DNA of 64,000 nt from Piromyces finnis finn (taxonomy: Eukaryota > Fungi > Neocallimastigomycota), in contig MCFH01000015.1 in the NCBI GenBank assembly GCA_002104945.1, positions 620,001 to 684,000 of the forward strand, given 5' to 3'. Each line of letters begins with the position of its first letter. Position 1 is the stretch's first letter. Shown in pieces: positions 12,320-58,081 of this stretch. Position numbers and translations under genes: made by a program. The notes under the pieces are model-generated. The model was not told the DNA's origin and did not search any database. It saw only the letters and a program-made list of their open reading frames with translations.

Positions 12320-14473
12320 TTAATCTAGACCAATCCCTTCGTTAATATCATCGGTGGGTTCTGGGATGAGTAGTGGATCGTCGATTAAAGTGACAGAAAA
12401 AGTTTTATCATTTTCATTGAAAATTTCTTCTTCATCCTCGGGTTCGAAAAAAAATGGATCGGTGGTGATCCTTTCTTCGTTCTTTTCATCTGATTCATCA
12501 TACCATTCAGGAAACTCCGTCGCTTGATCATCCGTTGTACTGTAGTAGGATAGGAAAGGAAAATCGAAATCAAAATCAAAATCAGGAAAATCATCTTTGA
12601 TGATAGGATTCGATTTTTCAAGTTCTATTTCTCCATTTTCATTAATACAATATCCTTCTTCAGAACAGGTGCTCTTTGGATTGGAACAGGTATGATGTCC
12701 TGAATGATAACCACAACCATAATACATACCATCGGAAGAATAAACCATGGATTTTCCATTATTAAGAAACACATTATTTCTACCTGGATCAAGATTGGTA
12801 ATCCTATTCTTTTCACCTAATCGAATTAAAAAATCATTCATGGAATAGGAATCAAATTTAATGGCTTTAAATTCACCCATAATGGTGGCAGCTACCCCTG
12901 CGACAATAGGTGCTGAAAAAGAAGTACCATAGAAATAATCATCATGATCTCTTCCTTTCTCATCTTGATAACTACCATACACATAAAATGGTGCATAAAT
13001 ATTTACTGTTTCACCACTATTGGAATACGCGTCTACTTCATAATGATTAGAGAATATAGGATGAATATCTTTAATACCACCAACACAAATTACTCCATAA
13101 AAGGAACATGGACAATACTGAAAATTATGCTTTCGATTATAGGTAAGGGCACCATCATTACCGGCTGAGGCAATGACCGTGGCACCCTTTTCAACTAATC
13201 GACGAATCAATAATTGATAGTGATGATAATTATCCCCAGGTTCTGAAATTGGATAATAAATTCCGGAAGAAAGATTAATAACCGTTTTATGAGGTCGAAT
13301 CAAGGTATCAATAATGTATTGTAAGGCTAAAAACATATCTTCTTCTAAAAACTTACCCTCCTTGGAATGAACCGCAATACCATAAATATTGGCTTTATTG
13401 GCCACGCCACTCTCTAAACCTCCAACAATATCTGCTACAATTTCACCGTGATAGGAGGCTTCCCTATGTAAACCACATCTGCTTTCCTCTAGACTCTCGG
13501 ATAGTATGGCATTTTGGATTTCTGCAACACATCGAACCTGACGCTCCTTGCCGTGATTGGAAAACTCTTCATTTTCAAAGTTAAACCCGGTGTCAATCAG
13601 GATAATGTCTATGTCTTCTCCTGCTGAACTAGGATAATAATAATTATAATCAAAGGAACCTATAATATCATGATTCACAATTCCTTGTGAAATTAGAGAA
13701 AGATGCATATAGGTATCTTCTCTAACAGTAACATTTTTCCATCCAGTTTCTCGTTGAATTGTTCTTATTTTGTAATAGTGTTCTTCTCCCTCCTCCTCCT
13801 CCTCCTCCTCCTCCTTTACGGCATTATTCCATTCCATCTCTCGTTTTACCACTTTTCTATTATAATCATCGTCCTCTTCCATCATGACATCATCCCATTT
13901 TATTTCTTGTTTTACCACCTTTCTGTCATAATTACCATTTTCCATAACATCAATATTAATTTGTTCACCTATTCTCACACTAGAAACATAGGAAAGTTCC
14001 TCTACTTTTTTTACTAAATCTTTAGAAAGATAGGCATATAGTACGGTACTATCCTCAACAGAAGAAATTGGAAAAACATACGGTGATCTCACCGTATTTT
14101 CTAATGCTGTTGGAATAGATGAATCGTCATCCCTTCTTTTTATCAATATATTTGTTTTTAGGGCTTCAAAATTTTCAGTATTTACATAGGTATCTTTATT
14201 ATTTAAAATTAAGGAATGAATTTCATCCACTTTCCCATTAATAAATTCCGTGGTATTGACGACAGGAAAGGACAATTCTTGTCGTTTTTCAACTCCAAGA
14301 GAAGATTTAATAAATACCATGTAATAACGTTCATTTTTTGATTCTTCTATATACGCTACATTATTTGAAAAGGGTAAATCAGCTATACGTTGACGACGAA
14401 AACCATCTACTTTTGCTATTAAAAGTAGGATAACACTTTGCCATATAAAATATAATTTATAAAAATTTTGCAT
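12320..14473 (-). CDS. Secreted S8 subtilisin-like protease 1 (I9-like prodomain, mini-hevein module, acidic tail), 717 aa
   Basis: Single-exon ORF with hydrophobic N-terminus. Triad motifs ILIDTG, YHGEIVAD and GTSFSAP, oxyanion SAGND. C-terminal CGYHSGHHTC...CSEEGYC followed by a D/E/F-rich tail. Confidence 0.92.
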   Translation of the reverse strand: MQNFYKLYFIWQSVILLLIAKVDGFRRQRIADLPFSNNVAYIEESKNERYYMVFIKSSLGVEKRQELSFPVVNTTEFINGKVDEIHSLILNNKDTYVNTENFEALKTNILIKRRDDDSSIPTALENTVRSPYVFPISSVEDSTVLYAYLSKDLVKKVEELSYVSSVRIGEQINIDVMENGNYDRKVVKQEIKWDDVMMEEDDDYNRKVVKREMEWNNAVKEEEEEEEEGEEHYYKIRTIQRETGWKNVTVREDTYMHLSLISQGIVNHDIIGSFDYNYYYPSSAGEDIDIILIDTGFNFENEEFSNHGKERQVRCVAEIQNAILSESLEESRCGLHREASYHGEIVADIVGGLESGVANKANIYGIAVHSKEGKFLEEDMFLALQYIIDTLIRPHKTVINLSSGIYYPISEPGDNYHHYQLLIRRLVEKGATVIASAGNDGALTYNRKHNFQYCPCSFYGVICVGGIKDIHPIFSNHYEVDAYSNSGETVNIYAPFYVYGSYQDEKGRDHDDYFYGTSFSAPIVAGVAATIMGEFKAIKFDSYSMNDFLIRLGEKNRITNLDPGRNNVFLNNGKSMVYSSDGMYYGCGYHSGHHTCSNPKSTCSEEGYCINENGEIELEKSNPIIKDDFPDFDFDFDFPFLSYYSTTDDQATEFPEWYDESDEKNEERITTDPFFFEPEDEEEIFNENDKTFSVTLIDDPLLIPEPTDDINEGIGLD

Positions 14474-14589
14474 TTTTTTTTTTTTTGAATTTTAAATTTT
14501 GAAAATGAAATTTAAATTTTTTAAAATTATTTATATATTATATATAAATGTATTTTTTTTTTATTAAACTAATTGTTATAAAAATACAT

Positions 14590-14622
<33 letters not shown>

Positions 14623-16084
14623 CCTTCAAGGAAATATATATACAGGTTATTTAATAAGATTGATAATTTATTGGTATATAAAATTGGTATGTATCATTAA
14701 AAAAAATTTAAAATTTCTTTTATGGTTTTTTTTTTAATGAATAAGGATATGAATTATTATTATTATTCAAATTGTTGTCATTCTTGTTAATTATTAATAT
14801 ATATTTTATTTATTTATCTTGTTATTATTGCTGTTATTTTATTTTTTATTTTATTTTTTTTTTTTTTTGAATTTAATAAACTTTTTTTTTTGGAAGAATA
14901 GCTTTTTTTCTTATTTATAATTATGATTGAAATATTACTATTAATTTAAAAGAATAATTGGTACGAAATAAATAAAAATACAATTTATTTATTTTTTTTT
15001 TATCTTTTTATATTCGTTGTTGTTGTTACTGTTGTTATTGTTGAAATTTATTTTAAATTTAAAAGAATTTTTTAACAATTAATTGAGAATTTTTTTTATT
15101 TTTCCTGTTTTTTCTTTCTTTATATATTAATAATTAATAATTAATACAATTTATTTGTTCATTTCTTTTTATTTTTTTTTATTTTTTTTTTTTTTATATT
15201 ATTACTGTACATTCAAATGAATATTTAAAAAGAAGTAAAAAAAAAAAAAAAAACATTTTTTCTTTTCTAATTTCCTTTTTTTTTTTTTTTTTTTTTTACT
15301 TTTTTTTTATATATATATATTTTTTTTTTAATTTTTTTTTGTAGGGGACAAAGCTTTTTTTTAATTAAAAATAATGATTTACAAATATGAAACTTAAAAA
15401 TTTATATTAAATTTTATTAATTAAAATTTTTATTATAAATTAAATTTTTTTTTTTTTTTTTAAAAAAAAAAGTAAAAACGAAGGAAAAAAAAAAAAAAAA
15501 GTATAATACTAGAAATAGGTTTATCTCTCTCTATTTATATATTACGTATTCGTATTATTTTTTTCTAAACATTTATTCATTTTATATGAAAAAAAGGCAT
15601 GTCTTTGATATTCTTTTATTAAAGTATTACTATCTGATAAAATAAGGTTACACAACTATAAATTGGGCTAAATCAATAGTTTTATTAATAAATAAAACTA
15701 ATTAAAAAAAAAAAAACTTTGAATATAATACTAAAAATAGTATTATTATATAAAAACAATAATAACAATAATACTAATAATACTAATAATGATAAGATAA
15801 TAATACTATTTAAAAATATTTTATAAATAATATATAAAATTTATAAATAATACACACACCATACCATCCATATATATAAATATATAAAGTATATATACAA
15901 AAACAAAATATGATTTTTTCTTTTATTCTTTATACAATAATTATTATTTTTCTATAAACTATAATTTATTACCTATAATATATAATGTACTTTTTTTTAT
16001 TTTTTAATTCTATTATTATATTTTTTTTCTATTCTATTTTTATTTATTCATTTTTTTTTTTTTTTTTTTACTTCATTTGATTAA

Positions 16085-18175
16085 TTATTGGTAGTAAAGG
16101 CTTTTCCATTGCATTTTCATTATTTTCTTGGCTATTAAAGTTTTTATTCTGTATTCATTTATTTCATGTCGTTCATTTCCTTCTTCATCTAAATAAAGAT
16201 CAAGATCAATAACTTCTTCTTCATCCTCTTCTAAATCAATCTCATCTTCCTCTATTTCAATATCACCAACATCTATGGGTGGCGTATCTGTTTCTTCATC
16301 TATAATATCCTCTTCTATGCTTGTTGTGATGGTATCATAGGATTCCATAAATGTGAGGGTGATGGAAATAGTTGGATTGTCATTCATGATACTTTCTACC
16401 ATGGTTTCTACTGGATTAGGAATAGTATTTAAAGTTGAGGTGACTTCTATCATGGTGGCTTCAATAGTAGAAGTTGGAAAAACAAGTGTTGTAGTTGTAT
16501 TCATTTCGATGATTGTACTTTGTAACATGATTTCTGTAGTGGTGGTGGTAGTAGTAGTGCTGTTATTATAGGGTATCTCCAAATTTCTACAGAAACCATC
16601 TTCGGAACAATATTCATTAGAGGGGCATTCTAGGTTTCCCGAGTGTATACCACAACCATAATAAATATCATTAGAGGAATAATTAATATGTTTACCATTA
16701 TTAATAAAAATATTATTTTCCTCTTTTGGTATATTGCTGATAATATCTTTAAGGCCAAGTTCAGTTAACCATGTTAACATTATTTCGGTGGTAAATTTAA
16801 TCTCAGAATGTTCACTCATAAGGGTAGCTGCAACACCAGCAGTTAATGGAGATGAGAATGAAGTTCCTTCAACACTTTTTTCTTTATCCACTCCATTACT
16901 ATCTTGATAAAGAAGATCCATATCAAATGGTGCATAAATATTAACATTTGAACCATGGTTAGAATCTACTGCTTTTCTATAATCATTGGATGTGTTTGGA
17001 TCCATGACTTCAACACCTCCAACACATATAACATTTTCAAAAGAACAGGGGTATAAAGCTTCTTTGGATGCCTCTTTCACCGTACCTGATCCATGATTAC
17101 CGGCTGCTGCAAAAATAATACCTCCTTTAGTTGTAATTTCATTTATTAATTTTTCATAATGATCCAATTCACTTTTTTGTTCTTCATAATGATAGTATTT
17201 ACCGAAAGAAAAATTGATGACTGTTTTGTACGGTCTTATTAAATGATCACTAATATATTGTAATCCGGCAATAATATCAATATATTTAATACTGCCTAGT
17301 AATGGATCAATATCTATTTTAACTCCATAAATATTTGCTTTATTGGCTACCCCTCTGTCTAACCCACCAGCAGCATCTGCGACACATTCTCCATGATTTT
17401 TAATATAGATATCATCAGATCGACAATCTTTATCGGAAATGTCTACCGGTATACCATCTTTTATAAATGTGGAACAACGGGCGATACGATCATTCGTATT
17501 GGAAAATTCTGAATGATTAAAGTTGAAACCAGAATCCATGATAATCATATCTATATTTTCCCCAGCAGACGCTGGATAATAATAATTATAATCGTATTGA
17601 TCTATATGATCCAATGAAAATTTTCCTTGAGAAAGTAAGGATAAATGCATATGGGTATATTCCTTTACTCCAACACCCTTCCATTTTGTTTCCTTTTTAA
17701 TATCCTCTTCATTATAGTTTGTTGCTAATTCTGCATAACTATCGGGTAGACAATCTTTAACATAAGCTATCGCTTTTATTTTTCTTACAAGATCATTAGA
17801 AAGGTAGGCATATAATACAGTACTGTCCTCTACGGTTGATACGGTATACACTAGATTTGAAATCCATGATTCATTTTCTCTTTTATTATATTTTGATGAT
17901 GATTTCTCTATTTCAACTAATTTTTCAGGATCTTTATAGGTATCTATATTTTCAATAATTAACCCTTGAAGATCATGAACAATATTATTAATTAAGACAT
18001 GCGTTTCTTGACGCTTTTCAAAAAATTGCTTTTTTTTACTTCCATTATTTACAAAAATCATATAATAATTATCTTTTATTTGATCATCATCCTTGTCATT
18101 CATAACATAACTATACGCCATCCAATTCATTATCATTATACTCCATAGGAGTAAAATTTTATTATTTTTAAGCAT
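16085..18175 (-). CDS. Secreted S8 subtilisin-like protease 2 (mini-hevein, Thr-rich linker, acidic tail), 696 aa
   Basis: Single-exon ORF with signal-like N-terminus. Motifs IIMDSG, NHGECVAD, AAGNH and GTSFSSP; CGIHSGNLECPSNEYCSEDGFC, then T-rich and D/E-rich segments. Confidence 0.92.
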   Translation of the reverse strand: MLKNNKILLLWSIMIMNWMAYSYVMNDKDDDQIKDNYYMIFVNNGSKKKQFFEKRQETHVLINNIVHDLQGLIIENIDTYKDPEKLVEIEKSSSKYNKRENESWISNLVYTVSTVEDSTVLYAYLSNDLVRKIKAIAYVKDCLPDSYAELATNYNEEDIKKETKWKGVGVKEYTHMHLSLLSQGKFSLDHIDQYDYNYYYPASAGENIDMIIMDSGFNFNHSEFSNTNDRIARCSTFIKDGIPVDISDKDCRSDDIYIKNHGECVADAAGGLDRGVANKANIYGVKIDIDPLLGSIKYIDIIAGLQYISDHLIRPYKTVINFSFGKYYHYEEQKSELDHYEKLINEITTKGGIIFAAAGNHGSGTVKEASKEALYPCSFENVICVGGVEVMDPNTSNDYRKAVDSNHGSNVNIYAPFDMDLLYQDSNGVDKEKSVEGTSFSSPLTAGVAATLMSEHSEIKFTTEIMLTWLTELGLKDIISNIPKEENNIFINNGKHINYSSNDIYYGCGIHSGNLECPSNEYCSEDGFCRNLEIPYNNSTTTTTTTTEIMLQSTIIEMNTTTTLVFPTSTIEATMIEVTSTLNTIPNPVETMVESIMNDNPTISITLTFMESYDTITTSIEEDIIDEETDTPPIDVGDIEIEEDEIDLEEDEEEVIDLDLYLDEEGNERHEINEYRIKTLIAKKIMKMQWKSLYYQ

Positions 18176-20148: not shown

Positions 20149-22296
20149 CTATAATTCTAAAGACATTGAAATTGTAGTAGTTGATACTTTTTTAGTTGTA
20201 GATTTTTTAGTTGTTATTTTTTTTGTTGTTGTCTTTTTAGTCGTAAATTTTTTAGTTGTTGTTGTTTTCTTAGTAGTAGTTTTTTTGGTTGTTGTCTTTT
20301 TAGTAGTAGTAGTTTTTTTTGTTGTCGTCGTTTTTTTAGTTGTTGTTGTCTTTTTGGTTGTTGATTTTTTAGTAAGCGTAGTTGTAGCAGTAGTAGTGAT
20401 CTTTGTTGATGCTTTTTTAGAAGTAGTAGTAGTTTTTTTTGTAGTTGTTGATGTTTTTTTCATTGACGTGGTGTTAGTTTTTGTAGGGGTTGTAGCGTTA
20501 CTAGTAGATTTAATAGAATAAGTGGTGGTTTTGGGGGGTTCATTTGTGGTAGTAGTTGAAGTTATTTCTGGAATTATAGATTCAATTAATGTAGAATTAC
20601 CAGGATTAGAATTTAAATCATTTTCTTCTAATTTTATTTCTTCACAAAATCCTTCATCTGTGCAGAACTGATTTTCCGGACATTGTATCGTTTTTTCAAT
20701 CAATGGATCACAACGAATATACGTATTCTCTTGATAATATATCCGCTGTTTGCCGTTATTAACAAATAGATTTCCTGGTCCTGATACCATTCCATAAATA
20801 ATTGATTTTTGACCCAACTCTGTTAAATAATCCATCATGGTTTTAATGGTAAACCGGGTATCGGGATTTTCACTCATAAGGGTAGCAATAATTCCAGATA
20901 CAATTGGGGATGAAAAGGACGTCCCTTCAGGATAGGCTTCTAAATTCATACCTTTTGAATTTTGGTATAAAACATTAACTTCATAGGGTGCATATATATT
21001 TACAGATTCTCCATAATTTGATTCCATGGCTCTTTCATAGGTATCCTTATTAAACCCATTGACTCCATTTACACCACCAACACAAATAACTTGATCAAAG
21101 GAACATGGATAAAAGGCATTTCCAGAGACTTCATCATAAGCAGATAAACCATTATTACCTGAAGCAGCCACAACTATTCCCTTTTTCTCTATAATTTCAT
21201 TTATTAATTTTTGATAGTGTAAAATGGCTTCGGTTTCTTCAGCCATGGCATAAAAACTACCAAAAGATAGATTAATTACCGTTTTATATTCTCTTATTAA
21301 ATGATCAATGATATATTGTAATCCAGCAAATATATCGACCTCTTTAATATCTCCAAACCATACTTTAAGAGCAATACCATAAATATTAGCTTTACTAGCT
21401 ACACCCTTTTCTATTCCGGCAGCGATATCTGAAATCATTTCTCCATGATAATCCGAATATCGATCAGTTGTACCGCAAAAACGTTCATCTGAAACAGTTT
21501 CTACTTTACCATTACTAATTTTAACAACACATTTTACTATTCGTTCATCTGTATTATTGAATTCGGGATGCTTAAAATTAAAACCAGAATCTAAAAATAT
21601 CATATCAATATCTTTTCCAGCAGTCTTTGGATAATAATAGGTCGTATCATAATGTCCTATATTTTCTTTCGAATATTTTCCCTGAGAAATTAAGGATAAG
21701 TGTAATGGGGCATTTTCTTTAATACCAACTTCCTTCCATTGGGTTTCCTCTATAATTTCATTGATATTATAATTTGCGGTGAGTTTAACAAATCTATTGG
21801 GTGTAATTTCATTAATTCCTTTCATTTTTTTAATTTTTTCCACTAAATCATGTGAAAGATAGGCATAAAGTACGGTGCTATTCCCAACAGTAGAAATCGG
21901 ATAAACAAAATTTGTATCTCCATAATCCATGGCATAATGACTTTCTTCACCTTCTTCTTTTCTTTTCTTTTTTCTTTTTTTTTCATCTTCATCCTCTTCT
22001 TTAATTTCTTCAAATTTTTCAATATCTCTATACGTATCTTTATTTTCAATAATCAAACTATGAATTTCATTTACCATTAAATTAATGAAACCATCAACTT
22101 CTTGACGCTTTTCTTTTTTATTATCGGAATTCCCATTATCCATAAAAATCATATAATATTTATCATCTTCTGATAATTCATATTTATTTTGCCTCTCTAA
22201 TTCATAGTCATTGGCATCATCTTTGGCATAGACCCATTTTATCCATAAAATAATAATACTCAATAAGGTATAAATTCTACTGTATAACTCTTTCAT
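20149..22296 (-). CDS. Secreted S8 subtilisin-like protease 3 (mini-hevein, Lys/Thr-rich basic tail), 715 aa
   Basis: Single-exon ORF with signal-like N-terminus. Motifs IFLDSG, YHGEMISD, ASGNN and GTSFSSP; CDPLIEKTIQCPENQFCTDEGFC, then (TTTKK)n. Confidence 0.92.
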   Translation of the reverse strand: MKELYSRIYTLLSIIILWIKWVYAKDDANDYELERQNKYELSEDDKYYMIFMDNGNSDNKKEKRQEVDGFINLMVNEIHSLIIENKDTYRDIEKFEEIKEEDEDEKKRKKKRKEEGEESHYAMDYGDTNFVYPISTVGNSTVLYAYLSHDLVEKIKKMKGINEITPNRFVKLTANYNINEIIEETQWKEVGIKENAPLHLSLISQGKYSKENIGHYDTTYYYPKTAGKDIDMIFLDSGFNFKHPEFNNTDERIVKCVVKISNGKVETVSDERFCGTTDRYSDYHGEMISDIAAGIEKGVASKANIYGIALKVWFGDIKEVDIFAGLQYIIDHLIREYKTVINLSFGSFYAMAEETEAILHYQKLINEIIEKKGIVVAASGNNGLSAYDEVSGNAFYPCSFDQVICVGGVNGVNGFNKDTYERAMESNYGESVNIYAPYEVNVLYQNSKGMNLEAYPEGTSFSSPIVSGIIATLMSENPDTRFTIKTMMDYLTELGQKSIIYGMVSGPGNLFVNNGKQRIYYQENTYIRCDPLIEKTIQCPENQFCTDEGFCEEIKLEENDLNSNPGNSTLIESIIPEITSTTTTNEPPKTTTYSIKSTSNATTPTKTNTTSMKKTSTTTKKTTTTSKKASTKITTTATTTLTKKSTTKKTTTTKKTTTTKKTTTTKKTTTKKTTTKKTTTTKKFTTKKTTTKKITTKKSTTKKVSTTTISMSLEL

Positions 22297-23575: not shown

Positions 23576-26505
23576 TTAGTCTTGAATTTCTTTTGCAAAA
23601 TTGTAAATTCTGGAAGCACTTCTTTCTAATTCTTCCATCTTTAAATTCTTCTTCTTTATTGCGTTTAAAATGTCATTATAATCATCCTTTGAACCTGGCA
23701 TATAAATATCACCAGAAGCTTTAATTACTTTATATGGTGTTGGACCAGAATATCTACTTTTGTTACCTAAAGTAGACATACCAACAATCCAATCGGTCAC
23801 TACAATACCATCAAAATCAAATTCATTTCTTAAAATGTCAATAATTAATTCTTCACTTTCATTGGTGTGAACACCATTAATTAAATTGTAGGAGGTCATG
23901 ACCGCCTTTGGATTTGATTCTTTGATACAAATTTCGAATCCTTTCAAGTATATTTCTCTGAGGGCTCTTTCTGAAATATTACTGCTACTGGTATAACGAT
24001 TATATTCTTGGTTATTAGCAGCAAAATGTTTTATGGAAACAAAAGCATTTTTGTGTTTTTGAACTCCCTTGGTAATAGAAGCGGCAAAGTAACCACTAAT
24101 TAATGGATCTTCAGAGAAATATTCATAATTTCTACCACATAAAATACTTCTATGGATATTTAAGGCTGGTGCAAGCCATAAATTAATATTGAATATTTCC
24201 ATTTCAGTACCGACAATATCACCACAAATTTCAGCAAATTCTCTATTCCAACTTTGAGCAATAGCTGTACCAATTGGAATGGCAGTTGTGTATTGGTGTA
24301 ATATAACAGCATCCTTTGGTACTTTTGGTGTCATTAAATCAAGAATCCATTTAATATAACTTGGAAGGGTATCTAACATTGATGAAGGAATACTTCCCTC
24401 CGTGGAGTGGTAACCATCTTTATCTTCATAATAATCCTTGGCAATTCTTATTCCAGCAGGACCATCAGACATAATTATTGGCTTTAAATTAGCAACTTTT
24501 GCTGTTTCACCAGCAGCACCTGCAACAGATGAAGCGGCACTACCAACAACACTTGCAATACCTCCATCTGGATTGAAGGCACCAACCACTAATTTTGCTT
24601 TATCTTCTTTGGATAAATTTTTAACTTGTTCATTAATTTCAAATACTTTATCGTAGTTTTCAGTTTCACTCTTAATGCTATTAACGTTAAGTATGTACTT
24701 TTGAACATTCATTAAATCATCTTTTTTCATTGATTTAAAGCTAGCATCGGTAAAACCTGGATTTCCCATTTTATTTTGGAGTTGTTTCACCATAACTCTT
24801 GATGGAACAGTAATGACAGCACATGGTTTAGTGTTTCTACTAGAATTACCAACACGAACAATGTACTCTCCTTCATCTAAAATGTAGGAAGCACTTTCAG
24901 TATCGTAACTAGCAAATTCAGATAGTTTAAAACTTAATGAAAGAATTTGGCTTTCATTTGGCATTAGTTCCTTTGATTTAGCAAAGTTGACTAAAATTTG
25001 GTAAGGCTCATCTAAATTTGTATTTGGCTTGGATAAGTAAAGTTGAAGGACTTCTTTTCCATTAAATTTACCAGTATTTGAAACAAAAGTATTGATGGTA
25101 AATTCATCCCCATTTAAATAGGAAGACTCGATATTGAAGTTGAAATCAGTGTAAGATAAACCAAAACCAAATGGGAACATAACATCTACGTCTAAAGTAT
25201 CAAAGTAACGATATCCAACAAAAATACCTTCTTTATAATTGGTATCGGAGACTTCTCCAAAATCTCCAATAGTTGGGTAATCTTCTTGTTTACTCCAAGT
25301 TGTTGTTAATTTACCGGATGGATATTTTTTACCTGAAATAATATCTACTAAAGCTTTTGAGGTACTGACACCGAGTTGAGAAAGAATCAAAATATTTTCA
25401 ACTTCTTCAAGACCAGATAAATCAACAGGTCCACCAGTATTTAAAACAAGCATAAATTTTTTGTAACCTCTAGCCATGGTTAAAATATTCTTTTTTTCAG
25501 TATCGGTTAATAAAACATCACCCTTTACAAATTTTCTATCTGTTCCTTCACCAGAAATTCTGGATAAAACGTAAATGGCAATGTCACCAGTTTCTGGGAA
25601 TTTAATGGTATATTCAGGTTCACTCATAATGACACCCAAATTACCCATAATACTAGTAATTGGATGGAATATAGCATCAAATTGTAACTTTTTATTAAAT
25701 TCTTCACGAGCCTTGGCATATACTCTGTCGTATTCGTCTAAAAAGTCTTTTGATAAAATTTCAAAACCTTCTTTAATGAAAGCTTCTTCAATCGTGTCAA
25801 AGGAACGTGAATTTACTTCACCAGAACCTGTACCACCTTTAACTGTATTTCTTATACCATTACCATACAAGTATACTTGTTTGTCATTTTCATTAAGAGG
25901 AAAATCCCCATTTTTTCTTAATAATACAGTACATTCTGATAAATAATTTTCTAAAATATTACGATGTTTTATTTCATAATCATTCCATTCTTCGTTATTC
26001 CTCGTATTGTTATCTAAGTTGATTATATATTATTATATATTGTTATATATCATCATAAAATAAAGTGATATTAATAAAATTATTATTAATTAGTCATCTT
26101 AAAGTTGATTGGACGGCAAGCTAATTTTTACTATAATTTCTTTTTTAAAATTTAATTATATGAAAAGCTAAAAAAAACCGTTTTTTTTTTTTTTTTTTTT
26201 TATAGGGAATAGTATGATAGTAAAACAAATGTTACATTTTAAATAAACTTTTTAACTATTTTTTTTTCTATGAAAAATGAAAATAATAAATATTCCATAT
26301 CCTATTTATTTTCTCTCTCTTTTTTTTATCGATAGTCTTTTTTAATATTAACAATATTACTTTATATTTTTTTTATTTATATATAAATAATTTTTTTTTT
26401 TCCTATTCAATTTCTATTTTATAAGAAATAGTTACCATTAACTGGAATGGATGATACAAAGAATAGATTAAAAACAGCTAAAGCAATAAAATTAATTATT
26501 TTCAT
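23576..26505 (-). CDS. GH3 beta-glucosidase, domain-permuted bacterial type, with spliced signal-peptide exon (about 835 aa)
   Basis: Exon 1 26505-26436 encodes MKIINFIALAVFNLFFVSSIPVN (GT donor). Exon 2 26013-23576 follows a TAG acceptor, and the frame is kept (2508 nt). Motifs VLLRKNGDFPL, GGTGSGEV, SRISGEGTDR, GYRYFD and FPFGFGLSYT come first; SDGPAG, RNYEYFSEDP, KHFAANNQE, MTSYN and nucleophile VVTDW come last. Confidence 0.93.
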
Positions 26506-28143: not shown

Positions 28144-28176
<33 letters not shown>

Positions 28177-32959: not shown

Positions 32960-33063
<104 letters not shown>

Positions 33064-35005: not shown

Positions 35006-35995
<990 letters not shown>

Positions 35996-36029
35996 AAGTG
36001 AAGAAGAGGTATTAGAAATTACTGATGAA

Positions 36030-43100: not shown

Positions 43101-43725
43101 ACTACATACGAATACATAATACATAGTATTACTACTACTATTACTTTGACTATTACTATTACTATTACTATTACTATTACTATTACTATTACTATTACTA
43201 TTACTATTACTATTACTATTACTATTACTATTACTATTACTATTACTATTACTATTACTATTACTATTACTATTACTATTACTATTACTATTACTATTAC
43301 TATTACTATTACTATTACTATTACTATTACTATTACTATTACTATTACTATTACTATTACTATTACTATTATATTACTATTACTATTACTATTACTATTA
43401 CTATTACTATTACTATTACTATTACTATTACTATTACTATTACTATTACTATTACTATTACTATTACTATTACTATTACTATTACTATTACTATTACTAT
43501 TACTATTACTATTATATTACTATTACTATTACTATTACTATTACTATTACTATTACTATTACTATTACTATTACTATTACTATTACTATTACTATTACTA
43601 TTACTATTACTATTACTATTACTATTATTATTACTTTGACTATTACTATTATTATTACTTTGACTATTACTATTACTATTAACTACCACTAATACTAATT
43701 TATAATACATAGTATTACTACTACT
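43101..43725 (-). repeat. Second copy of the (TAGTAA)n composite satellite, inverted relative to 6830-7436
   Basis: (TTACTA)n with TTACTTTGACTATTAC variants (reverse complement of the AGTCAA variant). ACTACATACGAATACATAATACATAGT at ~43101 is the reverse complement of the embedded motif. Confidence 0.95.
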
Positions 43726-45508: not shown

Positions 45509-47140
45509 TTATTTGGTACAAGTACCGTATAAAGTTTGACATCCATTATCAATTTTACAACTGGAAGTACCATACTTTTGACAGTAACCCAAGATGGAAC
45601 AACACTTATTATCACTACACTTTGATTCACCAGCATGGATACCACATCCATTATAAACACCATTCATAGAATATACAATAAGTTTGCCATTATTAACAAA
45701 TAAACCTGGGGTATCGTAGGTAATGTTTTGGACTCTATTTTCTTGACCATATTTTTGTAAATAGTTTTTAAGCATAATACTAGTATTAAATGTTTTTCCT
45801 ATATTTTCACCCATAAATAAAGCGGCAACACCAGAAACAATAGCAGAAGAGTATGATGTTCCTGAAGGATTGCTTCTCATATTAGTTTTATCATCCATAG
45901 TTCTATAAGCAATACTGAAATCAAATGGAGCAAAAATATCAATACCATTACCATAATTAGATAACTTTGCTCTATATATATATTGAATATTTGATGAGGT
46001 TTCACTGTTAACCCCCCCAACAGAAATGACATTATTGAATTGGGATGGTAAATGGTATAAATCATTTTTGACATCATTTACTAAGGTACCGTCATTTCCT
46101 GCTGAAGCAACAAAAACAGCACCAACTTGAGCTAATGAATTGATAATTTCTTGTTCACTAGAATATTCACCTTCCACTTGACTAGAGTACTTATAACCTC
46201 CATAAGAGAAATTGAAAATAGCTTTATTAGCTCTTAAATACTTCTTTTTAATGTATTGTAAGGCGGCAACTTCATTAGCTGCAGTGAATTCTTTAAAGTT
46301 TATACCATAAATATTGGCTTTCTTTGCAACACCATCAGTAGTACCTGCTATAACGGCAGCAACTTTTGAACCATGATTAACAGAAGAATCCTTATTACCA
46401 CAAATCTTTGAATTAATTTCGGTAACCTTACTTTTATCTACGCTTAAAAGACATCTAGCTTCACGATTAGTATTTGAGAAATTTGGGTGGTTAAAGTTAA
46501 AGTCTTGATCAAATATAAAGACATCAACATCAGTTCCAGCAGTAACTGGATAATAATAACTGGTATCATATTCTTCAACAAACTTACTACTATATTCCCC
46601 TTGAGAAATGGAAGAAAGATGGAATGGGGTTTCCTTTCTTACTAAAAGATCACTCCATCCAGTATGCTTTAAAACTCTATTGTAACTATAGTGAGCTTCT
46701 GCTTGATAAACAAAATCTTTTTCAAATCCTAAAACATCTGGAAATTCTCTAATGGTATCAACTAAATCCCCGGTAAGGTAGGAATAAAGAATGGTTTTAT
46801 CATTTACATTAGCAATTGGATAGATAAATGGAGATTCTCCATAATCAATTTCAGTATTTTCTGAGTCGTCTCTCTTTCTTAGGTTACTTTCTTCTTCCAT
46901 TTCTTCTAAAACAGTAACATTTTTATAGGTATTAAAGTTTCCTACAATTAAATTATGTATTTCATTGATGGTAGCTTCAACATTATCACTAATTTCTTGA
47001 CGTTTTTTATTATGGTTTTCTTCACTTGGATCTCTAATATATATCATATAAAAACCTTCGTCATTATTTTCAATTTTATTTGAAAATACTGAGTTTATTA
47101 AAAATATGACTAGTATGGATAAAATATAGAAATTCTTCAT
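45509..47140 (-). CDS. Secreted S8 subtilisin-like protease 5 with C-terminal hevein/CBM18-like domain, 543 aa
   Basis: Motifs FIFDQDF, NHGSKVAA, SAGND and GTSYSSA; C-terminus CGIHAGESKCSDNKCCSILGYCQKYGTSSCKIDNGCQTLYGTC. Confidence 0.92.
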   Translation of the reverse strand: MKNFYILSILVIFLINSVFSNKIENNDEGFYMIYIRDPSEENHNKKRQEISDNVEATINEIHNLIVGNFNTYKNVTVLEEMEEESNLRKRDDSENTEIDYGESPFIYPIANVNDKTILYSYLTGDLVDTIREFPDVLGFEKDFVYQAEAHYSYNRVLKHTGWSDLLVRKETPFHLSSISQGEYSSKFVEEYDTSYYYPVTAGTDVDVFIFDQDFNFNHPNFSNTNREARCLLSVDKSKVTEINSKICGNKDSSVNHGSKVAAVIAGTTDGVAKKANIYGINFKEFTAANEVAALQYIKKKYLRANKAIFNFSYGGYKYSSQVEGEYSSEQEIINSLAQVGAVFVASAGNDGTLVNDVKNDLYHLPSQFNNVISVGGVNSETSSNIQYIYRAKLSNYGNGIDIFAPFDFSIAYRTMDDKTNMRSNPSGTSYSSAIVSGVAALFMGENIGKTFNTSIMLKNYLQKYGQENRVQNITYDTPGLFVNNGKLIVYSMNGVYNGCGIHAGESKCSDNKCCSILGYCQKYGTSSCKIDNGCQTLYGTCTK

Positions 47141-50100: not shown

Positions 50101-51531
50101 TAGAAAATTAGGTATTTTTATATCATTTTAGGTATAGTAAAAGTTTTTATACAAAATTTTAAAAAGTTAGTAACCTTTTTGGTGAAAAATAAAACTTAAA
50201 TTTTACTATACAACATTTAAAGTAATATTAAATAACGTTAAAGAAAATTGATAAAATTCTCTTTTTTTTTTTTTTTTAATTAAAAATTGTAGTAAGAAGA
50301 AAAGGAAAAAGAAGAGTAAAGTGTGGTTTAACGATTTAATCAAGAATTCATAATATCTTTTTTTTTTTTTTCAAACTGTTATTATAATACCTTTCATTTT
50401 TACAAAATATTGTACTTTAATTTTTTCACGTCTTATGTAAGATGGTTGTAAAATGTAATGTATAAAAAGTTTTTATCTAATCGAAAAATACTCAATGTCT
50501 TTTTTTTTTTTTTTTTTTTTTGTATCCCTTGTTTAAAAGTATCACATCACATTGTCATTATGATGATATTTTTTTTAAAAAGTCAAAATGTATACCTTTG
50601 TATGTGTGGAAATATAATATATAGTAATATTAAGGCTTAATAATAAATCTTTTAATAAGAAAGGAATATTCAAGGTAAAAAAAAAAAAATACAATGGTAT
50701 TAACAATTAATCAGGGAATTTTTTTTTTTTTTCATTGTAAGGATGAATGAATGGTAAAAACTTTGATGAAAGCAATAAAACATTAAAATACCTTTTTAAA
50801 GAAATATATGGAATAATAAAATTTTCAATACCAAAATAATTTGACTATTTAAAAGAAAAAATAAAATATATAAAAAAATTTATAATTATAATGTTATGAA
50901 AATTTATGAATGAATTAGGAATGAGATGAAACAGATAAAACATAAATTAAAGAATAAAAATATAGATATGCATCCATACTTTTATTTTTTAGTATTTATA
51001 TATTTCTATAAAATACTATCATAATAATTATATTAATCATAGAAATTTCTGTTTTTTTTTTTTTTTTATAACAATCATAATAAATAATTATAATAAAGAA
51101 TCATAATAAATAATCTTTAGAGATTAGTTATTAATATATTTATTAAAAATTATATATAAATTATCCAATCCATAATGCGTTTTTATTAAATATTTTGTAA
51201 TGTGTAAAGGAAGATAAAGATATAATATTTTTACTATGTTATATTAATTTTTTTTATTATTTTATTATTTTATTATTTTATTATTTTATTATTATATTAT
51301 TATTTTATTATATTATTTTATTATTATATTATTTTATTATTATTTACATTCATTTCTCAATTATAGTATGATATTATATTTTTGATTGAATTTTTTTTTT
51401 TATTAATTATTTCATAAAGAATTCCTTCATTTTTTTTCCTCTTTCTCTTTCTTTCTTTACTGATAGAAAAGAGATTAAAAATTAATTAAATCAAAAAAAA
51501 AAAGGAAAGGATTTATTATTAAGATTTATTT

Positions 51532-53577
51532 TCATTTACATACACCAAAGTTACTTTGACATCCAGCATCACAATATTGTGATGAAGTACCACAGTATCC
51601 ATAATATGAACAACAATATCCAGATTTACAACTACCATATCCTTTACCACATCTTGTATTACTACCATATACTACGGAACAATAACCATAGTTTATTTGA
51701 CAACCTTGACTGGTTTTACAATAGCTACTACTTGATTTATAGCAATAGCCATCATCAGAACAACATTTACTACTACCGCAGGATTTAAGTCCAGAATTTA
51801 TACCACATCCATAGTAGACATTATTCATCGAATAAACAATTTTTTTACCATTATTAACAAATAAATTCTTAGTATTGCTTGGTAAATTTGAAATTCTATC
51901 CTTTTGACCAATTTTTGTTAAATAATCAATCATAGTATTTGTATCAAAATACATTGTTGAATTTTCTGCCATAACTAAGGCTGAAACACCAGCAACAATT
52001 GGTGAAGAAAGAGAGGTACCACTACCAGTGTAGGAAACATCCTTACTATCTCTTGTACGGTAGGACAATTTAACTGTGTATGGGGCAAAGATATCAATAC
52101 CATTTCCATAATTAGATTTGTCTGCTCTTTTTAAACTGGAGGAAATGTCGTTTAATTCTTTGGAGGCTACACCTCCAACAGAAATGACATTATTTAATTG
52201 AGATGGCATATGGTATCGATCATTGGTAGTATCAGAAACTAAAGCATTATTATTACCAGCTGAAGCAACAAAAACGGCACCTTTATTGACCATTGAATTG
52301 ATTAATTCTTGTTGAGATTTAAAGTCTTCACATGCCTTTGAATTGTAAAAACCGCCATAGGAAAAGTTAAAAACTGATTTGTTGGACCTCATCTTATTAC
52401 TTTTAATGTAGGTTAATGCCGCATTGATATTTTCGGTACTATATTCCGTCATTTCTATACCATAGAGATTAGCATTTTTGGCAACACCATCATAAAGACC
52501 TCCAAGAATAGTAGCCACCTTTGTTCCATGATCATTACTGGAATTATTATTTAAACAAGTTTTACCGGAAATTGAACTTACTTTTCCCTTATCTACCTTA
52601 ATAAGACATCTCACCGTACGACTATCGGTATTTGAAAAGTTTGGATGATTAAAATTAAAACCATTGTCAAATATAAAAATGTCTATGCCTTTACCACCAC
52701 TCTTTGGATAATAATAATTTGTATCGTATTTACCAATAAGCTGACTATTATATTTACCTTGAGAAATTAAGGAAAGATGAAGTGGTGAACTGGCACTGAC
52801 ATTGACATCATTCCATTTTGTTTGACTGGTAATATCCGATGCTTTATAGTAGGTGGTACTACTATCCTCTGGCTGGAAAACCACTCTTTTTTCAAAACCA
52901 ATAATATTTGGGAGGGTTAATACGGTTTCAAGTAAGTTTCCAGTAAGATATGAAAAAAGAATAGTTTTTCCATTGACATTGGCAATTGGATAGACAAAAG
53001 AAGATTCACCATAATTTTCTAAATGATGCTTAGGATCTCTTTTTCTTAAATAACTATCGGATTGATTCAATTCTTCAAGAAGAGTGATATTCTGATAAGT
53101 ATCAAAATTACTAACAATTAAATTATGGATTTCAGATATAGCAGCTTCAGCATTACTACTAATGATCTGACGCTTTTTTTTCTTATAACTAATTTCATCG
53201 GAGGTATCATTGACATGAATTAAATAGTAATATTCTTCATATTTTGCTCTTAATGGATCGATAGGTCCATTATCATTCAATAATGGTTTCAATGGTTCCA
53301 TAGGGCCAATATCATTGAATGGTTCTAATGGTTCATTAATATTCAATGGTTCTATAGGACCAATATCATTGAATGGTTCCATAGGTTCATGATGATTTAA
53401 TGGTTCTATAGGTTCATGGTTATTTAATGGTCCTAATGGTTCATTAATATTCAATGGTTCCATAGGTTCATGATTATTTATTGGTTTTTCTTTTAAAGGT
53501 TCCTCAGTCTCTACACCAAAAACTGAATTAATTAAAAGAATTATAATAATACTTAATAATATACAAAAGTTTTTCAT
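51532..53577 (-). CDS. Secreted S8 subtilisin-like protease 6 with N-terminal 9-aa repeats and two hevein/CBM18 domains, 681 aa
   Basis: Motifs FIFDNG, DHGTKVAT, SAGNN and GTSLSSP. Two 8-Cys modules, the second canonical (CGKGYGSCKSGYCCSYYGYCGTSSQYCDAGCQSNFGVC). Confidence 0.94.
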   Translation of the reverse strand: MKNFCILLSIIIILLINSVFGVETEEPLKEKPINNHEPMEPLNINEPLGPLNNHEPIEPLNHHEPMEPFNDIGPIEPLNINEPLEPFNDIGPMEPLKPLLNDNGPIDPLRAKYEEYYYLIHVNDTSDEISYKKKKRQIISSNAEAAISEIHNLIVSNFDTYQNITLLEELNQSDSYLRKRDPKHHLENYGESSFVYPIANVNGKTILFSYLTGNLLETVLTLPNIIGFEKRVVFQPEDSSTTYYKASDITSQTKWNDVNVSASSPLHLSLISQGKYNSQLIGKYDTNYYYPKSGGKGIDIFIFDNGFNFNHPNFSNTDSRTVRCLIKVDKGKVSSISGKTCLNNNSSNDHGTKVATILGGLYDGVAKNANLYGIEMTEYSTENINAALTYIKSNKMRSNKSVFNFSYGGFYNSKACEDFKSQQELINSMVNKGAVFVASAGNNNALVSDTTNDRYHMPSQLNNVISVGGVASKELNDISSSLKRADKSNYGNGIDIFAPYTVKLSYRTRDSKDVSYTGSGTSLSSPIVAGVSALVMAENSTMYFDTNTMIDYLTKIGQKDRISNLPSNTKNLFVNNGKKIVYSMNNVYYGCGINSGLKSCGSSKCCSDDGYCYKSSSSYCKTSQGCQINYGYCSVVYGSNTRCGKGYGSCKSGYCCSYYGYCGTSSQYCDAGCQSNFGVCK

Positions 53578-54961
53578 TTTGTATAATTTTTCTTTATTTT
53601 TATAAATTAGTTTAATTTATATTTAAATAAGATTTTTGTTAATTAGTTAAATATTAATAATCTATATTAATATGTCACTTTTTTTTTTTCCTTCTTCTTC
53701 TTAAATAAAATAAATACAAATTTTCTATATATATATATATTATTCTTATTATTAATATTATATATATTTAATGTTTATACAATTAATATTTACAAAATTC
53801 CAATATTTTCATAAATATAAAATATCTAAAAAATATTTATATAATTATTGAAATTTTTCTTTTTTTATATTTATTTTATTATTTGGAGGTTTAAGGAAAA
53901 AAAAAAAAAACCAATTTAAAGAGAAATTCCAATTTATATATATATTCTCATTTTTCAAAAAAAAGTAATAATAATAATAATGAACAATATTTACGATTAT
54001 CCATTGACATTTTGAAACTTTTAATTAAAATGGCTTCACTTCAAATTATTATTAAATAAAATTAAATTAAAAAGAAAATTATCATTACTAAATAAATTAA
54101 AAAAGCATATTTTTTATGAAAAGAATAAACATAAACTTTATTTATTATTATTCTTTAAAGATGACGAATCATAAAATAAATTAAAATTTTATTTTAATGA
54201 TTCTATTATTACAATAATGAAAAAAAATATGACCTCAAATTTTAAAATCATTTAATATTATTTTGGAAATAATATAATAATATATTTTTTAATAATTGAT
54301 AGTTTAATTATATATGGTAGTATTCTTATTATAAGCAATTTTATCTTTAGAAATAAAAATATTCAACTATATTCCATCAAACTTTTCTTATGGTGTAAAT
54401 TAAAAAAAAAGTATGATATTTTTCTCAGTCATAATGAGTTAAACCTTGATTCTAATGATTTTAATTATATAGTATAAATTTTATTTTATTTTATTTAATT
54501 AAATTAAATTAAATATCATAATATGAAACATTTACATGGCATGTTTATCAAATATTTATAATAAATAAAATTTATAAATCTTGTCATATTTAATTTATAT
54601 GTAATATTATTATCATAATTTTTAATTAAATTGTTTTAGATAATATGTTGATCTGATATTTTATTTCTTTTTTTAAAAGATTAATAATTATAATAAAAAG
54701 ACAAATTACATTTTACTACATTTTTATACTTTTTTTTTATTATTAAATGTTATTAATATTAAACTGTATCAATACTATTCAATAGTATTATTTATTATTA
54801 TTATCTATTATTTATTATTCTATTCTTTTGTTATTATTATGATTATAATTAATTTAATTAAAAAATAAAAAAAAGAATTCATCTTTACTTTTTTTGGCGT
54901 TTTTGTACAATATTAAATTTATCTTTTTTTTATTAATAATTTAAATTTTAATAAGCTTTTT

Positions 54962-55001
<40 letters not shown>

Positions 55002-56128
55002 TCTGGTAAAAATTCTTTGACTATTCCTATATAAAAGTTTTTTTTTTTTTTTTTCAATATATATATTCTTTTATACATTTGTTTTTATATGGTTAATATC
55101 ATAAAATCATAAAATATAATAATTATATATGATATTAACAAATTATTCAAAATGTATTTATAATATTCATACTATAATGATACTATAAAAAAAAAAAAAA
55201 AAAAGAATCACGATATTCCATAGAAATCTACCTCCCCATCAAATGTTTCCATTTAATTACTATGGGAAGAAAAAAAAAATTACTATTATCTTTGTTTCAT
55301 CTTTTCATATAACTTTTTAAAACATTACTTAGCCTTTTTAATCCTAAATACCACACACATTGAAAACATTTATAATAAAAATTTTAAAAAGTACATTAAT
55401 TCATAAAATATATCTTTTATTTACATAAAACTTAAAATTATGCCTAGCTTAGTATACTTTTTTAATAAAATTACAAAACGTTTATGCTAACAACTATGAT
55501 TTAAATTGTTACGATGATAATAAAATTTTTACTAGAAATAATAAACCAAGAAATATTGAAACTGTTAGAAAAATAAATAATAAATGCCTTACTGATTGTT
55601 GGATTTAATGAATATCCTAGGTCGTTTTTTACCTATATTTTGAAAATGCTTGGTTAAGGATGTTTTTTTTTTTTAAGTCATAAAATTTAATAATAAAAAT
55701 CAATATATAAAAAAAATGAAAAGATTTAAAATATTTCATTTCATTCCAATGTATTTAGAGTTGTTAATAAATTCTTTTATTCTATTTATTTTATTTTGTT
55801 ATATATTTATTCTATAATGATCATAAGAAAGAAGGGGAAAAAAAAAACGGATTCTATATCTTTGTTTTTTTTTTTTTTTAAATATATCTAATTTATATTA
55901 AAATAATATTTAATATTTTATGTTCTATAATAGAATAAATAGTTCTATAAATGAAATAAAATAAAAAAAAGATATTTTTTTTATATATTATTTCATTTTA
56001 ATACATTATAAATAATAAATGTTTATTTAATGAAATATATATATACAACTATTATAATTTCCTTTTTTTTTTTTTCAAGATATAATTTTTTTTTTTTTTG
56101 GTAAAATAAAAAAGATAGGAATAGTTAT

Positions 56129-58081
56129 TTAATAGCATATACCATAATGCTCTTTACAGTCATTTTTTATTCTACATTTACTATTTAAATAATAATGACA
56201 TTTATTGTCACTACCACAACAATAAGGGAAGAAACATTTTGTATTTCCGGCTTGAGGACCACATCCAATATATTTATTATTACCGGAATAAACAATATGC
56301 TTACCGTTATTAAGAAGAAGATTTTTGGTATTAGATGGTACATTTTCAATTACATCTTGAAGTGCATTAGCATTTAAATAATTTTTCATTAGTGTATCTG
56401 TAAAATTAGTGCTTTTGTATTCACTCATGATGGTGGCTACGACACCAGCAGTTATAGCACAAGAATTAGATGTACCCAAGGTAGTTTCAGTTATATTTTT
56501 ACTTCCGTTATTATAGGTTACCGTGACACGATTTGGTGTAAGTATATCAACCTCGGGTCCACGACATGATGTATTATGGAAACTATATTCATTTGGATCA
56601 TTTTCATTAACATCCATTGAGCCTACACAAAGAGTATGATTTGAATAACATGGATAACTTTTTAACTTATTTTCTTCATCATTAACATCTGATTTGGAAT
56701 TACCTGCGGCAACCACAACAATTACTCCTTTTTGATTTAATTCATAAAGAACTTCATCTAATTTTTCAATGTGTAATAAATCATCTTCTTTTTCGGTAGA
56801 ATAGGCATTACCAATGGCCATTAAAATAACTGTTTTATAGGGTTCGGCATAATCCGTAAGTACAGCATTTAATGAACTGATAAGATTAATGGAAGTTAAT
56901 TTCATGGCAATAGTGTAAATATTAGATTTGGATGCAGAACCATTTATGGTCCCAGCAGCAATAGCTGCCATTTTTGTTCCATGTTGATTCGTTGGATCAA
57001 GATGACAGGTCAATGGATTAAAATCAATATTACCATTGGCAACATTTGCTATACACTTTATTTCACGATCTTCATTTAAAAATTGGGTATGGGTAAGGGT
57101 AAAAGATCGATCAATAACAATAATATTTATTCCTTCACCAGCGGTAGATGGATAATAATAATTGGTATCGTACATTCCAACTAAATTTTTATCAAATTTA
57201 CCTTGAGAGAGCGCTGAAAGGGAATAACTACCATTTTTCAGAGATACTTCTTCCCATTGAGTTTCTAATTTAATTTCATCAACGTTATAGTTATACGCCT
57301 CTAATTCAATATCTGGAGCACATCCTTCCACATTTGGAATGTTTTTTACGTTATTTGCTAGGTTTGGGTTAAGATAGGCACTAAGTAAAACTTCATTTTG
57401 TGTATTGGCTATTGGGAAAACAAAAGATGATTTACTAAATTCACTGAATTTATCTGTTTGTCTCTTTTTTAATGCATTTTCTTGTTTAAGTTCTTCTAAA
57501 GCTTCTGGATTTTTAAAGGTATCAATATTGGTCATAATTAATTCATTGATTTCATTAATAATGAAATTGACATCAATATCTTGACGCTTAACAATACCAT
57601 TTGAGGTGATCACCTCAACGGTCTTGCTAACAACGACTAAATAAAAACCATCGTTACTTGTATTATCGACTGCAGTATTATCATTTATTATACTATTATC
57701 TATTATACCATCATCATCTACAGTATTATCGACTGCAGTATTATCATTTATTATACTATTATCTATTATACCATCATCATCTACAGTATTATCGACTGCA
57801 GTATTATCATTTATTATACTATTATCTATTATACCATCATCATCTACAGTATTATCGACTGCAGTATTATCATTTATTATACTATTATCTATTATACCAT
57901 CATCATCATCTACAGTATTATCATCATTTAATGTACTATCATTTATAATATTATCATTTATTGTATAATTATTTATAGTATTGTCATTTACTGTATTATT
58001 ATTATCTGCATTGACCAAAGAAAAAAGAAAAATGAATAAAATTGGTATAAAAAAAAAGGTGAAATAATTTGAATTCTTCAT
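56129..58081 (-). CDS. Secreted S8 subtilisin-like protease 7 with N-terminal 21-aa acidic repeats and a degenerate hevein-like domain, 650 aa
   Basis: Motifs IVIDRSF, QHGTKMAA, AAGNS and GTSNSCA. Four 63-nt repeats at ~57661-57912. C-terminal 8-Cys module. Confidence 0.9.
   Translation of the reverse strand: MKNSNYFTFFFIPILFIFLFSLVNADNNNTVNDNTINNYTINDNIINDSTLNDDNTVDDDDGIIDNSIINDNTAVDNTVDDDGIIDNSIINDNTAVDNTVDDDGIIDNSIINDNTAVDNTVDDDGIIDNSIINDNTAVDNTSNDGFYLVVVSKTVEVITSNGIVKRQDIDVNFIINEINELIMTNIDTFKNPEALEELKQENALKKRQTDKFSEFSKSSFVFPIANTQNEVLLSAYLNPNLANNVKNIPNVEGCAPDIELEAYNYNVDEIKLETQWEEVSLKNGSYSLSALSQGKFDKNLVGMYDTNYYYPSTAGEGINIIVIDRSFTLTHTQFLNEDREIKCIANVANGNIDFNPLTCHLDPTNQHGTKMAAIAAGTINGSASKSNIYTIAMKLTSINLISSLNAVLTDYAEPYKTVILMAIGNAYSTEKEDDLLHIEKLDEVLYELNQKGVIVVVAAGNSKSDVNDEENKLKSYPCYSNHTLCVGSMDVNENDPNEYSFHNTSCRGPEVDILTPNRVTVTYNNGSKNITETTLGTSNSCAITAGVVATIMSEYKSTNFTDTLMKNYLNANALQDVIENVPSNTKNLLLNNGKHIVYSGNNKYIGCGPQAGNTKCFFPYCCGSDNKCHYYLNSKCRIKNDCKEHYGICY

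Follow-up and report, generated by a model that had tools for sequence, protein, structure and literature searches.

A 64,000-nucleotide stretch of Piromyces finnis contig MCFH01000015.1 (positions 620,001 to 684,000; hereafter the window, with its first letter as position 1) carries seven intron-less subtilase genes, S1 to S7, all on the minus strand within positions 12320-58081 and encoding proteins of 543-717 amino acids. We favor the interpretation, at a probability of about 0.6, that these genes encode secreted zymogen proteases of the proteinase K type (S8A) with exchangeable C-terminal "addresses." The sequence, domain, fold, conservation, and phylogenetic evidence on which this interpretation is built was observed directly. 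Each prepro-enzyme would comprise a signal peptide, sometimes a low-complexity repeat, a propeptide resembling the I9 family, the catalytic domain, and a knot derived from hevein. Two conserved Lys-Arg sites in exposed propeptide loops would be cut by a kexin-type convertase, which would aid removal of the inhibitory propeptide. The first half of the knot (Y-x-GCG-x3-GN-x2-C ... C) would serve as a fixed, ordered C-terminal extension that most of the family has kept, and the second half, along with any further modules, would be exchangeable. Complete knots that retain sugar-contact residues (the distal knot of S6 and, in part, the proximal knot of S6 and that of S4) would most likely concentrate the protease on polymers of N-acetylglucosamine (GlcNAc), above all the chitin of fungal walls, whether the fungus's own or another's. 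In S1-S3, binding would have been replaced by long disordered tails that are acidic or Thr-rich, the latter probably O-glycosylated. The enzymes would break down proteins outside the cell, on the fungal surface or close to it.

Seven subtilase genes in one orientation

The window has a G+C content of ~20%, and eight long minus-strand open reading frames (ORFs) stand out from it at ~30%. Seven of them matched Pfam Peptidase_S8 at 70.6-106.5 bits, against a gathering cut-off of 21.8: S1 (12320-14473; 717 amino acids; 76.5 bits), S2 (16085-18175; 696 amino acids; 75.8 bits), S3 (20149-22296; 715 amino acids; 70.6 bits), S4 (37347-39047; 566 amino acids; 75.5 bits), S5 (45509-47140; 543 amino acids; 93.2 bits), S6 (51532-53577; 681 amino acids; 106.5 bits), and S7 (56129-58081; 650 amino acids; 77.6 bits). 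At this base composition 9.7% of codons are expected to be stops, and the probability that 543-717 codons stay open by chance is 1e-24 to 1e-32. Pairwise identity among the seven proteins is 27-53%, S5 and S6 being the nearest pair. An earlier reading of the same DNA, made from its letters without database searches (the sequence-only reading), had described seven co-oriented and strongly diverged paralogs in this region, and the ORF list, the Pfam matches, and the identities all agree with that description.

Residues are numbered here as in S4, and conservation was read from a seven-way alignment of S1-S7 and from a family alignment of 122 members. The catalytic Asp226, His272, and Ser457 and the oxyanion Asn368 are invariant in S1-S7 and nearly so in the family (Asp in 118/122, His in 122/122, Asn in 120/122, and Ser in 120/120). 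The seven proteins also share, without exception, Lys60-Arg61-Gln62 and Arg105 in the prodomain as well as Cys246 and Cys264; across the family, 90 of 98 members have Lys60-Arg61 and 94-95 of 99 have Lys104-Arg105. Another Cys pair, at S4 positions 385 and 392, covaries among the 122 members: Cys occupies both positions in 104-105 of them and Ser both in 11, S5 and S6 among these, while 4 have Ala or Val, as would be expected of a disulfide that is lost as a pair. All seven N termini contain a hydrophobic stretch of the signal-peptide type (12-residue Kyte-Doolittle mean of 1.9-3.7), from which we infer that S1-S7 are secreted. The sequence-only reading's assignments of S8 identity with its Asp/His/Ser motifs and oxyanion Asn, of signal peptides, and of a related prodomain were all upheld by these observations.

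An AlphaFold2 model of S4, built with the 122-sequence family alignment, reached a mean predicted local distance difference test score (pLDDT) of 90.8 and a predicted template modeling score (pTM) of 0.81, with the hevein module at pLDDT 95-97. When the model was submitted to Foldseek, the best matches in the PDB were 3f7o, a fungal cuticle-degrading protease, and 2prk (E 3e-21, template modeling score of 0.84-0.85 by target, ~22% identity). The modeled catalytic fold is that of a subtilisin alpha/beta enzyme, closest to proteinase K. The prodomain is predicted to run beta-alpha-alpha-beta-beta-alpha-beta, an I9-like order with one extra helix, and a shape match in the ESM Atlas, covering query residues 5-514, was to an Ascomycota cluster of I9 plus S8 proteins.

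Several of the genes contain internal repeats. In S1, amino acids 170-250 (~13724-13966) hold a short motif from around the propeptide/mature junction (..K.E..W..V..) in three tandem copies separated by a poly-Glu run; each of S2-S7 has this motif in single copy. A 63-nucleotide unit encoding 21 amino acids is repeated 4.1 times in S7 (57660-57922), between the signal peptide and the prodomain, and since its copies are 98% identical, we consider the expansion recent. A 27-nucleotide Pro/Glu unit is repeated 7.4 times in the N-terminal part of S6 (53288-53486), and the tail of S3 contains Thr/Lys-rich units (20178-20408). The coding tandem repeats of S3, S6, and S7 all lie outside the folded domains.

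The array extends past the end of the window. Beyond a leucine-rich repeat gene, at 686580-692064 of MCFH01000015.1 (L002 / L004; equivalent to window positions 66580-72064), lie P0035, a 546-amino-acid relative without a Cys tail, and P0012, a 623-amino-acid relative with CBM18, giving nine subtilases across ~60 kb; the following 10 kb contains no additional family gene. Within the window, tblastn with the seven proteins as queries (E 1e-3) detected no further subtilase copies, fragments, pseudogenes, or stand-alone propeptide genes. The eighth long minus-strand ORF (23576-25870), which sits between S3 and S4, was ruled out as a subtilase: by Pfam it is a GH3 glycosidase, with its domains in the permuted order GH3_C, Fn3-like, GH3_N. 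A (TATTAC) microsatellite occupies 43127-43697, its 95 copies being 95% identical, and accounts for the listed ORFs at 43146-43682 and 43369-43710.

A hevein-derived knot at a fixed junction

Six of the genes share the junction NNGK-x-VYS-x4-Y-x-GCG, and S3 reads YIRCD instead. Past the protease domain, Asn510-Asn511-Gly512-Lys513, Tyr523, Cys526, Cys535, Cys541, and Cys547 are invariant in S1-S7. Apart from the S3 variant, this is the arrangement that had been noticed in the sequence-only reading, in which a Cys module starts at a conserved YxGCG-like position right after the protease. We scanned the C-terminal parts alone with Pfam Chitin_bind_1 (PF00187), which has a gathering score of 27.8 bits. 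The cut-off was passed by S4 (43.5 bits; 37 bits in the whole protein) and by S6 (41.5 bits over two stretches; 34.3 bits in the whole protein). S5 (21.0 bits, E 4e-4) and S2 (20.1 bits, restricted to positions 2-23 of the 38 in the profile, its first half) fell below it, and the C termini of S1, S3, and S7 gave no match, S7 none even at E 10. The S4 module aligns with all four domains of wheat germ agglutinin (WGA), with an overall E of 1e-19. A fungal dockerin (CBM10) was rejected as the identity of the Cys module; the Pfam and PDB matches were to hevein and WGA, and the dockerin family PF02013 was found only in P0085, a relative from Orpinomyces.

Five modules display the eight-Cys pattern C-C-CC-C-C-C-C: the single module of S4 (amino acids 526-565; 37353-37472), that of S5 (499-541; 45518-45646), the proximal (591-633; 51679-51807) and distal (643-680; 51538-51651) modules of S6, and a degenerate module in S7 (607-649; 56135-56263) whose Cys spacing lines up with that of S5 and S6. 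The distal module of S6 gave the better of that protein's two Chitin_bind_1 stretches (profile positions 1-37 of 38). The other three genes have four Cys each, located by translation in S1 (amino acids 587-609, C-x8-C-x6-C-x5-C; 12647-12715) and S3 (529-551, with RCD for GCG; 20644-20712) and by the partial profile match in S2 (508-529; 16589-16654). By their register in the seven-way alignment, these half knots keep hevein Cys1, Cys2, Cys4, and Cys5 and have lost Cys3, Cys6, Cys7, and Cys8. Hevein disulfides pair 1-4, 2-5, 3-6, and 7-8, and therefore two self-consistent disulfides presumably remain in each half knot of S1-S3. No Cys-rich exons that would complete these half knots were found within 900 nucleotides downstream. 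The half knot is followed by an acidic tail in S1, by a Thr-rich/acidic tail with a terminal helix in S2, and by a Thr/Lys-rich repeat tail in S3. In an AlphaFold2 model of S2, the region containing the half knot (amino acids 501-530) has a pLDDT of 96, amino acids 541-660 fall to ~30, and a helix spans 670-695; the model is as confident of the half knot as of the protease, and it leaves the 120-residue Thr-rich/acidic tail disordered.

The modules also differ at the positions that contact sugar in hevein (Ser19, Trp21, Trp23, and Tyr30 in hevein numbering). The distal module of S6, with Ser19, Tyr21, Tyr23, and Tyr30, has the sole canonical set in the window. Its proximal neighbor has Ser19, Asp21, Tyr23, and Tyr30; S4 has Ser19, Asp21, His23, and Phe30; and S5 has Ser19, Leu21, Tyr23, and Ser30. 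S7, with Gly19, Asp21, Lys23, and Lys30, is without Ser19 and any of the three aromatics. In a family census of 27 proximal modules, position 21 is Asp or Asn in 18, and the full canonical set is present in 2 of the 27; among distal modules, 24 of 33 have at least two aromatics at the contact positions.

The sequence-only reading had described all seven proteins as subtilase-hevein fusions that could be tethered to the wall through their CBM18-like modules. The hevein origin of the module stands, with S4 and S6 recognized by Pfam, and the description as seven complete fusions does not, with S5 below the cut-off, S1, S3, and S7 unmatched, and S1-S3 reduced to half knots. Because the Pfam scores, the Cys loss in S1-S3, and the contact residues differ among modules, we grade the tethering claim. 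It is plausible for S6 and S4, in which chitin targeting is likely; it is weak for S5 and S7, in which targeting is doubtful; and it is unsupported for S1-S3, in which targeting would have been lost.

Relatives in the Neocallimastigomycota and public gene models

A word-index search returned at least 115 relatives of S4 at E 6e-39 or better, and the next matches were bacterial S8 proteins at E 5e-9. The relatives with named sources come from Piromyces, Neocallimastix, Anaeromyces, and Orpinomyces, and the remainder lie on metagenome/rumen-type or transcript-sized contigs. About 40% of the relatives combine PF00187 with PF00082. The ESM Atlas likewise contains two clusters that carry both families and are automatically named for the pair; no other cluster among the nearest does. 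After the NNGK junction, we distinguished tails with one, two, or three full knots; with a two-Cys stub and a Thr linker followed by a distal CBM18; with a four-Cys half knot and an acidic or Thr-rich tail; and with no Cys whatever, the last in about one-third of the relatives, some of them perhaps on truncated contigs. The proximal modules of P0010 and P0011 are canonical (CCSKYGYCG...YC). There were two further classes of tail: in P0040, P0053, P0054, P0056, and P0061 the hevein tail is replaced by an unrelated domain of ~240 amino acids with 12-16 Cys and no Pfam name, and P0085 is the single case of a family member bearing the fungal dockerin.

In a 119-row tree built from the protease part, tail class changes at least 41 times. 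The paralogs of the window fall into separate clades, each with its own close relative, and the array neighbors S1-S3 and S5-S6 group together. The closest relatives are P0001, the Piromyces sp. E2 orthologue of S4 (72% identical), P0032 for S6 (61%), P0033 for S2 (53%), and P0030 for S3 (73-75%), which is without the Cys stub. In Piromyces sp. E2, the S4 orthologue has a gene resembling S5/S6 upstream of it. Since the paralogs have relatives of their own and this upstream gene is present in E2, we conclude that the array is an old tandem expansion, older than the split of these species.

The exact products of only two of the genes, S5 (P0121) and S7 (P0122), are in the public P. finnis proteome, where those of S1-S3 are not on record. 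The public models of S4 and S6 look wrong. S4 (L003 18523-19794 for the public model) is broken into a 253-amino-acid S8 piece and a 52-amino-acid CBM18 piece, and its frame is continuous through 37347-39047. The S6 model is 723 amino acids long (50707-53577; L003 3564-6434) and runs 825 nucleotides past the stop codon into AT-rich DNA; no Cys-rich exon supporting this model was found within 900 nucleotides downstream.

Hints of expression came from sequencing runs. Coding sequence makes up 0.61 of 51500-58100; over these positions, word shares were 0.51-0.55 in three runs, each from a different study, that were guessed to be RNA and 0.97 in a DNA run, which is suggestive of transcription of the S6-S7 stretch and nothing firmer. 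The relative P0004 is alone on a 2075-nucleotide sequencing-run contig with short flanks, which is transcript-like, although its ends are ambiguous. A poly(A) check on the transcript-sized contig L005 was also ambiguous.

Competing interpretations and known systems

Several observations weigh against our interpretation of zymogen proteases with exchangeable addresses. Of the three Pfam families named in the sequence-only reading, Peptidase_S8 was matched by all seven proteins and Chitin_bind_1 by S4 and S6 only, and none of three prodomains matched Inhibitor_I9 at up to E 10. Five of the eight modules in the window miss the Chitin_bind_1 cut-off, and position 21, an aromatic residue in hevein, is Asp in S4, in the proximal module of S6, and in S7. 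Truncated contigs may be counted among the tailless relatives in our census, and expression in P. finnis is suggested by the word shares of runs that are themselves guessed to be RNA. Protease activity, Lys-Arg processing, sugar binding, and substrates, like secretion, are predictions.

We weighed three other explanations for the array. The knot nearest the protease may be a purely structural, disulfide-stapled cap that no longer binds sugar in any family member, the enzymes being free, soluble, and nutritional, with lectin activity confined to added distal modules. What is conserved beyond the protease, including the invariant Tyr523 and four Cys, is the junction together with the initial half of the knot; the S2 model shows this half ordered by itself; the high pTM suggests rigid docking; and canonical contacts, found in 2 of 27 proximal modules, are mostly present in distal ones. 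Yet the proximal module of S4 is the best Pfam match to CBM18 in the window, it retains Ser19, His23, and Phe30, and the proximal modules of P0010 and P0011 are canonical. His at position 23 is tolerated for binding in WGA, two of whose domains have it. We regard the structural cap as unlikely overall. We think it distinctly improbable that all seven proteases are tethered to chitin by their CBM18-like modules and remodel or shield the fungus's own wall. The module does begin at the same conserved position in all seven, CBM18 is hugely expanded (288 copies in P. finnis and 640 in Piromyces sp. E2; PMC6004548), and CBM18 genes of Caecomyces churrovis respond strongly to co-culture (PMC8665504). 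Such a shared tether is difficult to reconcile with the loss of four of eight Cys and the second half of the domain in S1-S3, with the missing Ser19 and aromatics of S7, with the absence of any Chitin_bind_1 match in S1, S3, and S7, and with the roughly one-third of relatives that have no Cys tail.

That the genes are decaying or silent duplicates without present function is scarcely credible. The low identity of neighbors (27-53%), the broken or odd public models of S4 and S6, and the absence of exact S1-S3 products from the public proteome would fit decay, but the seven frames are open for 543-717 codons where a stop is expected about every 10 codons, the catalytic residues are invariant, and each paralog has conserved orthologue-like relatives. 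In addition, the stretches between the genes are free of subtilase fragments and pseudogenes, and the word shares suggest transcript contigs in three studies. Secreted S8A zymogens with exchangeable C-terminal addresses remain the interpretation that we prefer. A further and rather unlikely reading is that a phylum-specific protease family has domesticated the knot as one of its integral parts and that the repeated trimming, doubling, and replacement of the knot record an arms race fought in the gut at the surface of the fungus. Pointers in this direction are the 27-53% identity of neighbors, the changes of tail class (at least 41), and the 98%-identical N-terminal repeats. Proteases parked on the fungus's own chitin might, for example, destroy incoming chitinases or lectins from ciliates and bacteria, or they might target partners that bear GlcNAc, methanogen walls among them. 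If this were true, the array would serve as a diversified arsenal for defense and interaction and not for feeding.

Anaerobic gut fungi are key degraders of fiber, and their expansions of S8 and CBM18 are both strikingly large. The locus described here shows the two expansions overlapping in one fused architecture. That architecture is real, typical of the lineage, already flagged by automatic annotation, and functionally uncharacterized. Since both parts are well known and the combination is already flagged, we consider the advance to be descriptive rather than conceptual. The sequence-only reading had raised the case that the architecture might prove widespread and already characterized; it is indeed common in the phylum, but we found no functional description of it. 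A full-text literature search likewise found no description of a subtilase-CBM18 fusion, of half-knot variants, or of the tandem array, in agreement with that reading's statement that it knew of no functional account. The locus also corrects the public gene models, which split S4 and carry S6 too far, and the public record has no exact products for S1-S3. The natural series of double, single, degenerate, half, and absent knots allows the share of the chitin-binding part in protease placement and stability to be tested.

The expansion of S08 peptidases in the Neocallimastigomycota has been reported, with the functions of the expanded peptidases said to remain undescribed (PMC8778642). In co-culture of C. 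churrovis with a methanogen, CBM18 genes were the most induced, for which the authors suggest wall remodeling, and the supplement lists three subtilase genes with near-consecutive numbers that were repressed ~eight-fold (PMC8665504). These papers count the two families separately (PMC8778642, PMC6004548, PMC8665504), whereas the array belongs to both expansions. Elsewhere CBM18 is joined to chitinase, deacetylase, tyrosinase, or lectin repeats, its partners in Batrachochytrium being tyrosinase, deacetylase, or none (PMC3569864); in the array it is joined to a protease. The cellulosomal S8 proteases of Clostridium thermocellum, which have double dockerins (PMC12484212), similarly combine a subtilase with a small non-catalytic anchoring module that positions it on a surface, but the module, the target, and the lineage all differ, and we regard the likeness as an analogy of design only.

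Compared with proteinase K and the cuticle-degrading subtilases (S8A; 2prk, 3f7o, 3f7m), S1-S7 are alike in Asp-His-Ser order, oxyanion Asn, and, as modeled, fold and probable propeptide layout, and they are predicted to be secreted, as the proteinase K group is. The relationship is nevertheless distant, S4 being ~22% identical to proteinase K and detected by phmmer at only E 3e-8. The array proteases differ in the predicted extra helix of the propeptide, the two conserved Lys-Arg sites, and an extra Cys246-Cys264 loop; furthermore, the matched proteinase K chains, of 277-284 residues, end at the catalytic domain, to which the array proteases add the hevein-derived knot.

What links the array to hevein, WGA, and CBM18 is the eight-Cys pattern, seen in five modules, the CGxxAGxxxCPNNxCCSxxGxCG core, and, for S4 and S6, a Pfam score that passes the cut-off. 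It differs from hevein in that most proximal copies have Asp or Asn at the aromatic position 21 and in that three genes retain a two-disulfide half. The truncated hevein HEV32 has three disulfides left as well as the aromatic triad, and its binding of chito-oligosaccharides is preserved. Like the half knots, it is a shortened domain without the C-terminal part, and its structure (PDB 1t0w) was among the sequence matches of S4. The stubs of S1-S3, in comparison, would have two disulfides (Cys1-Cys4 and Cys2-Cys5), and they end before position 30.

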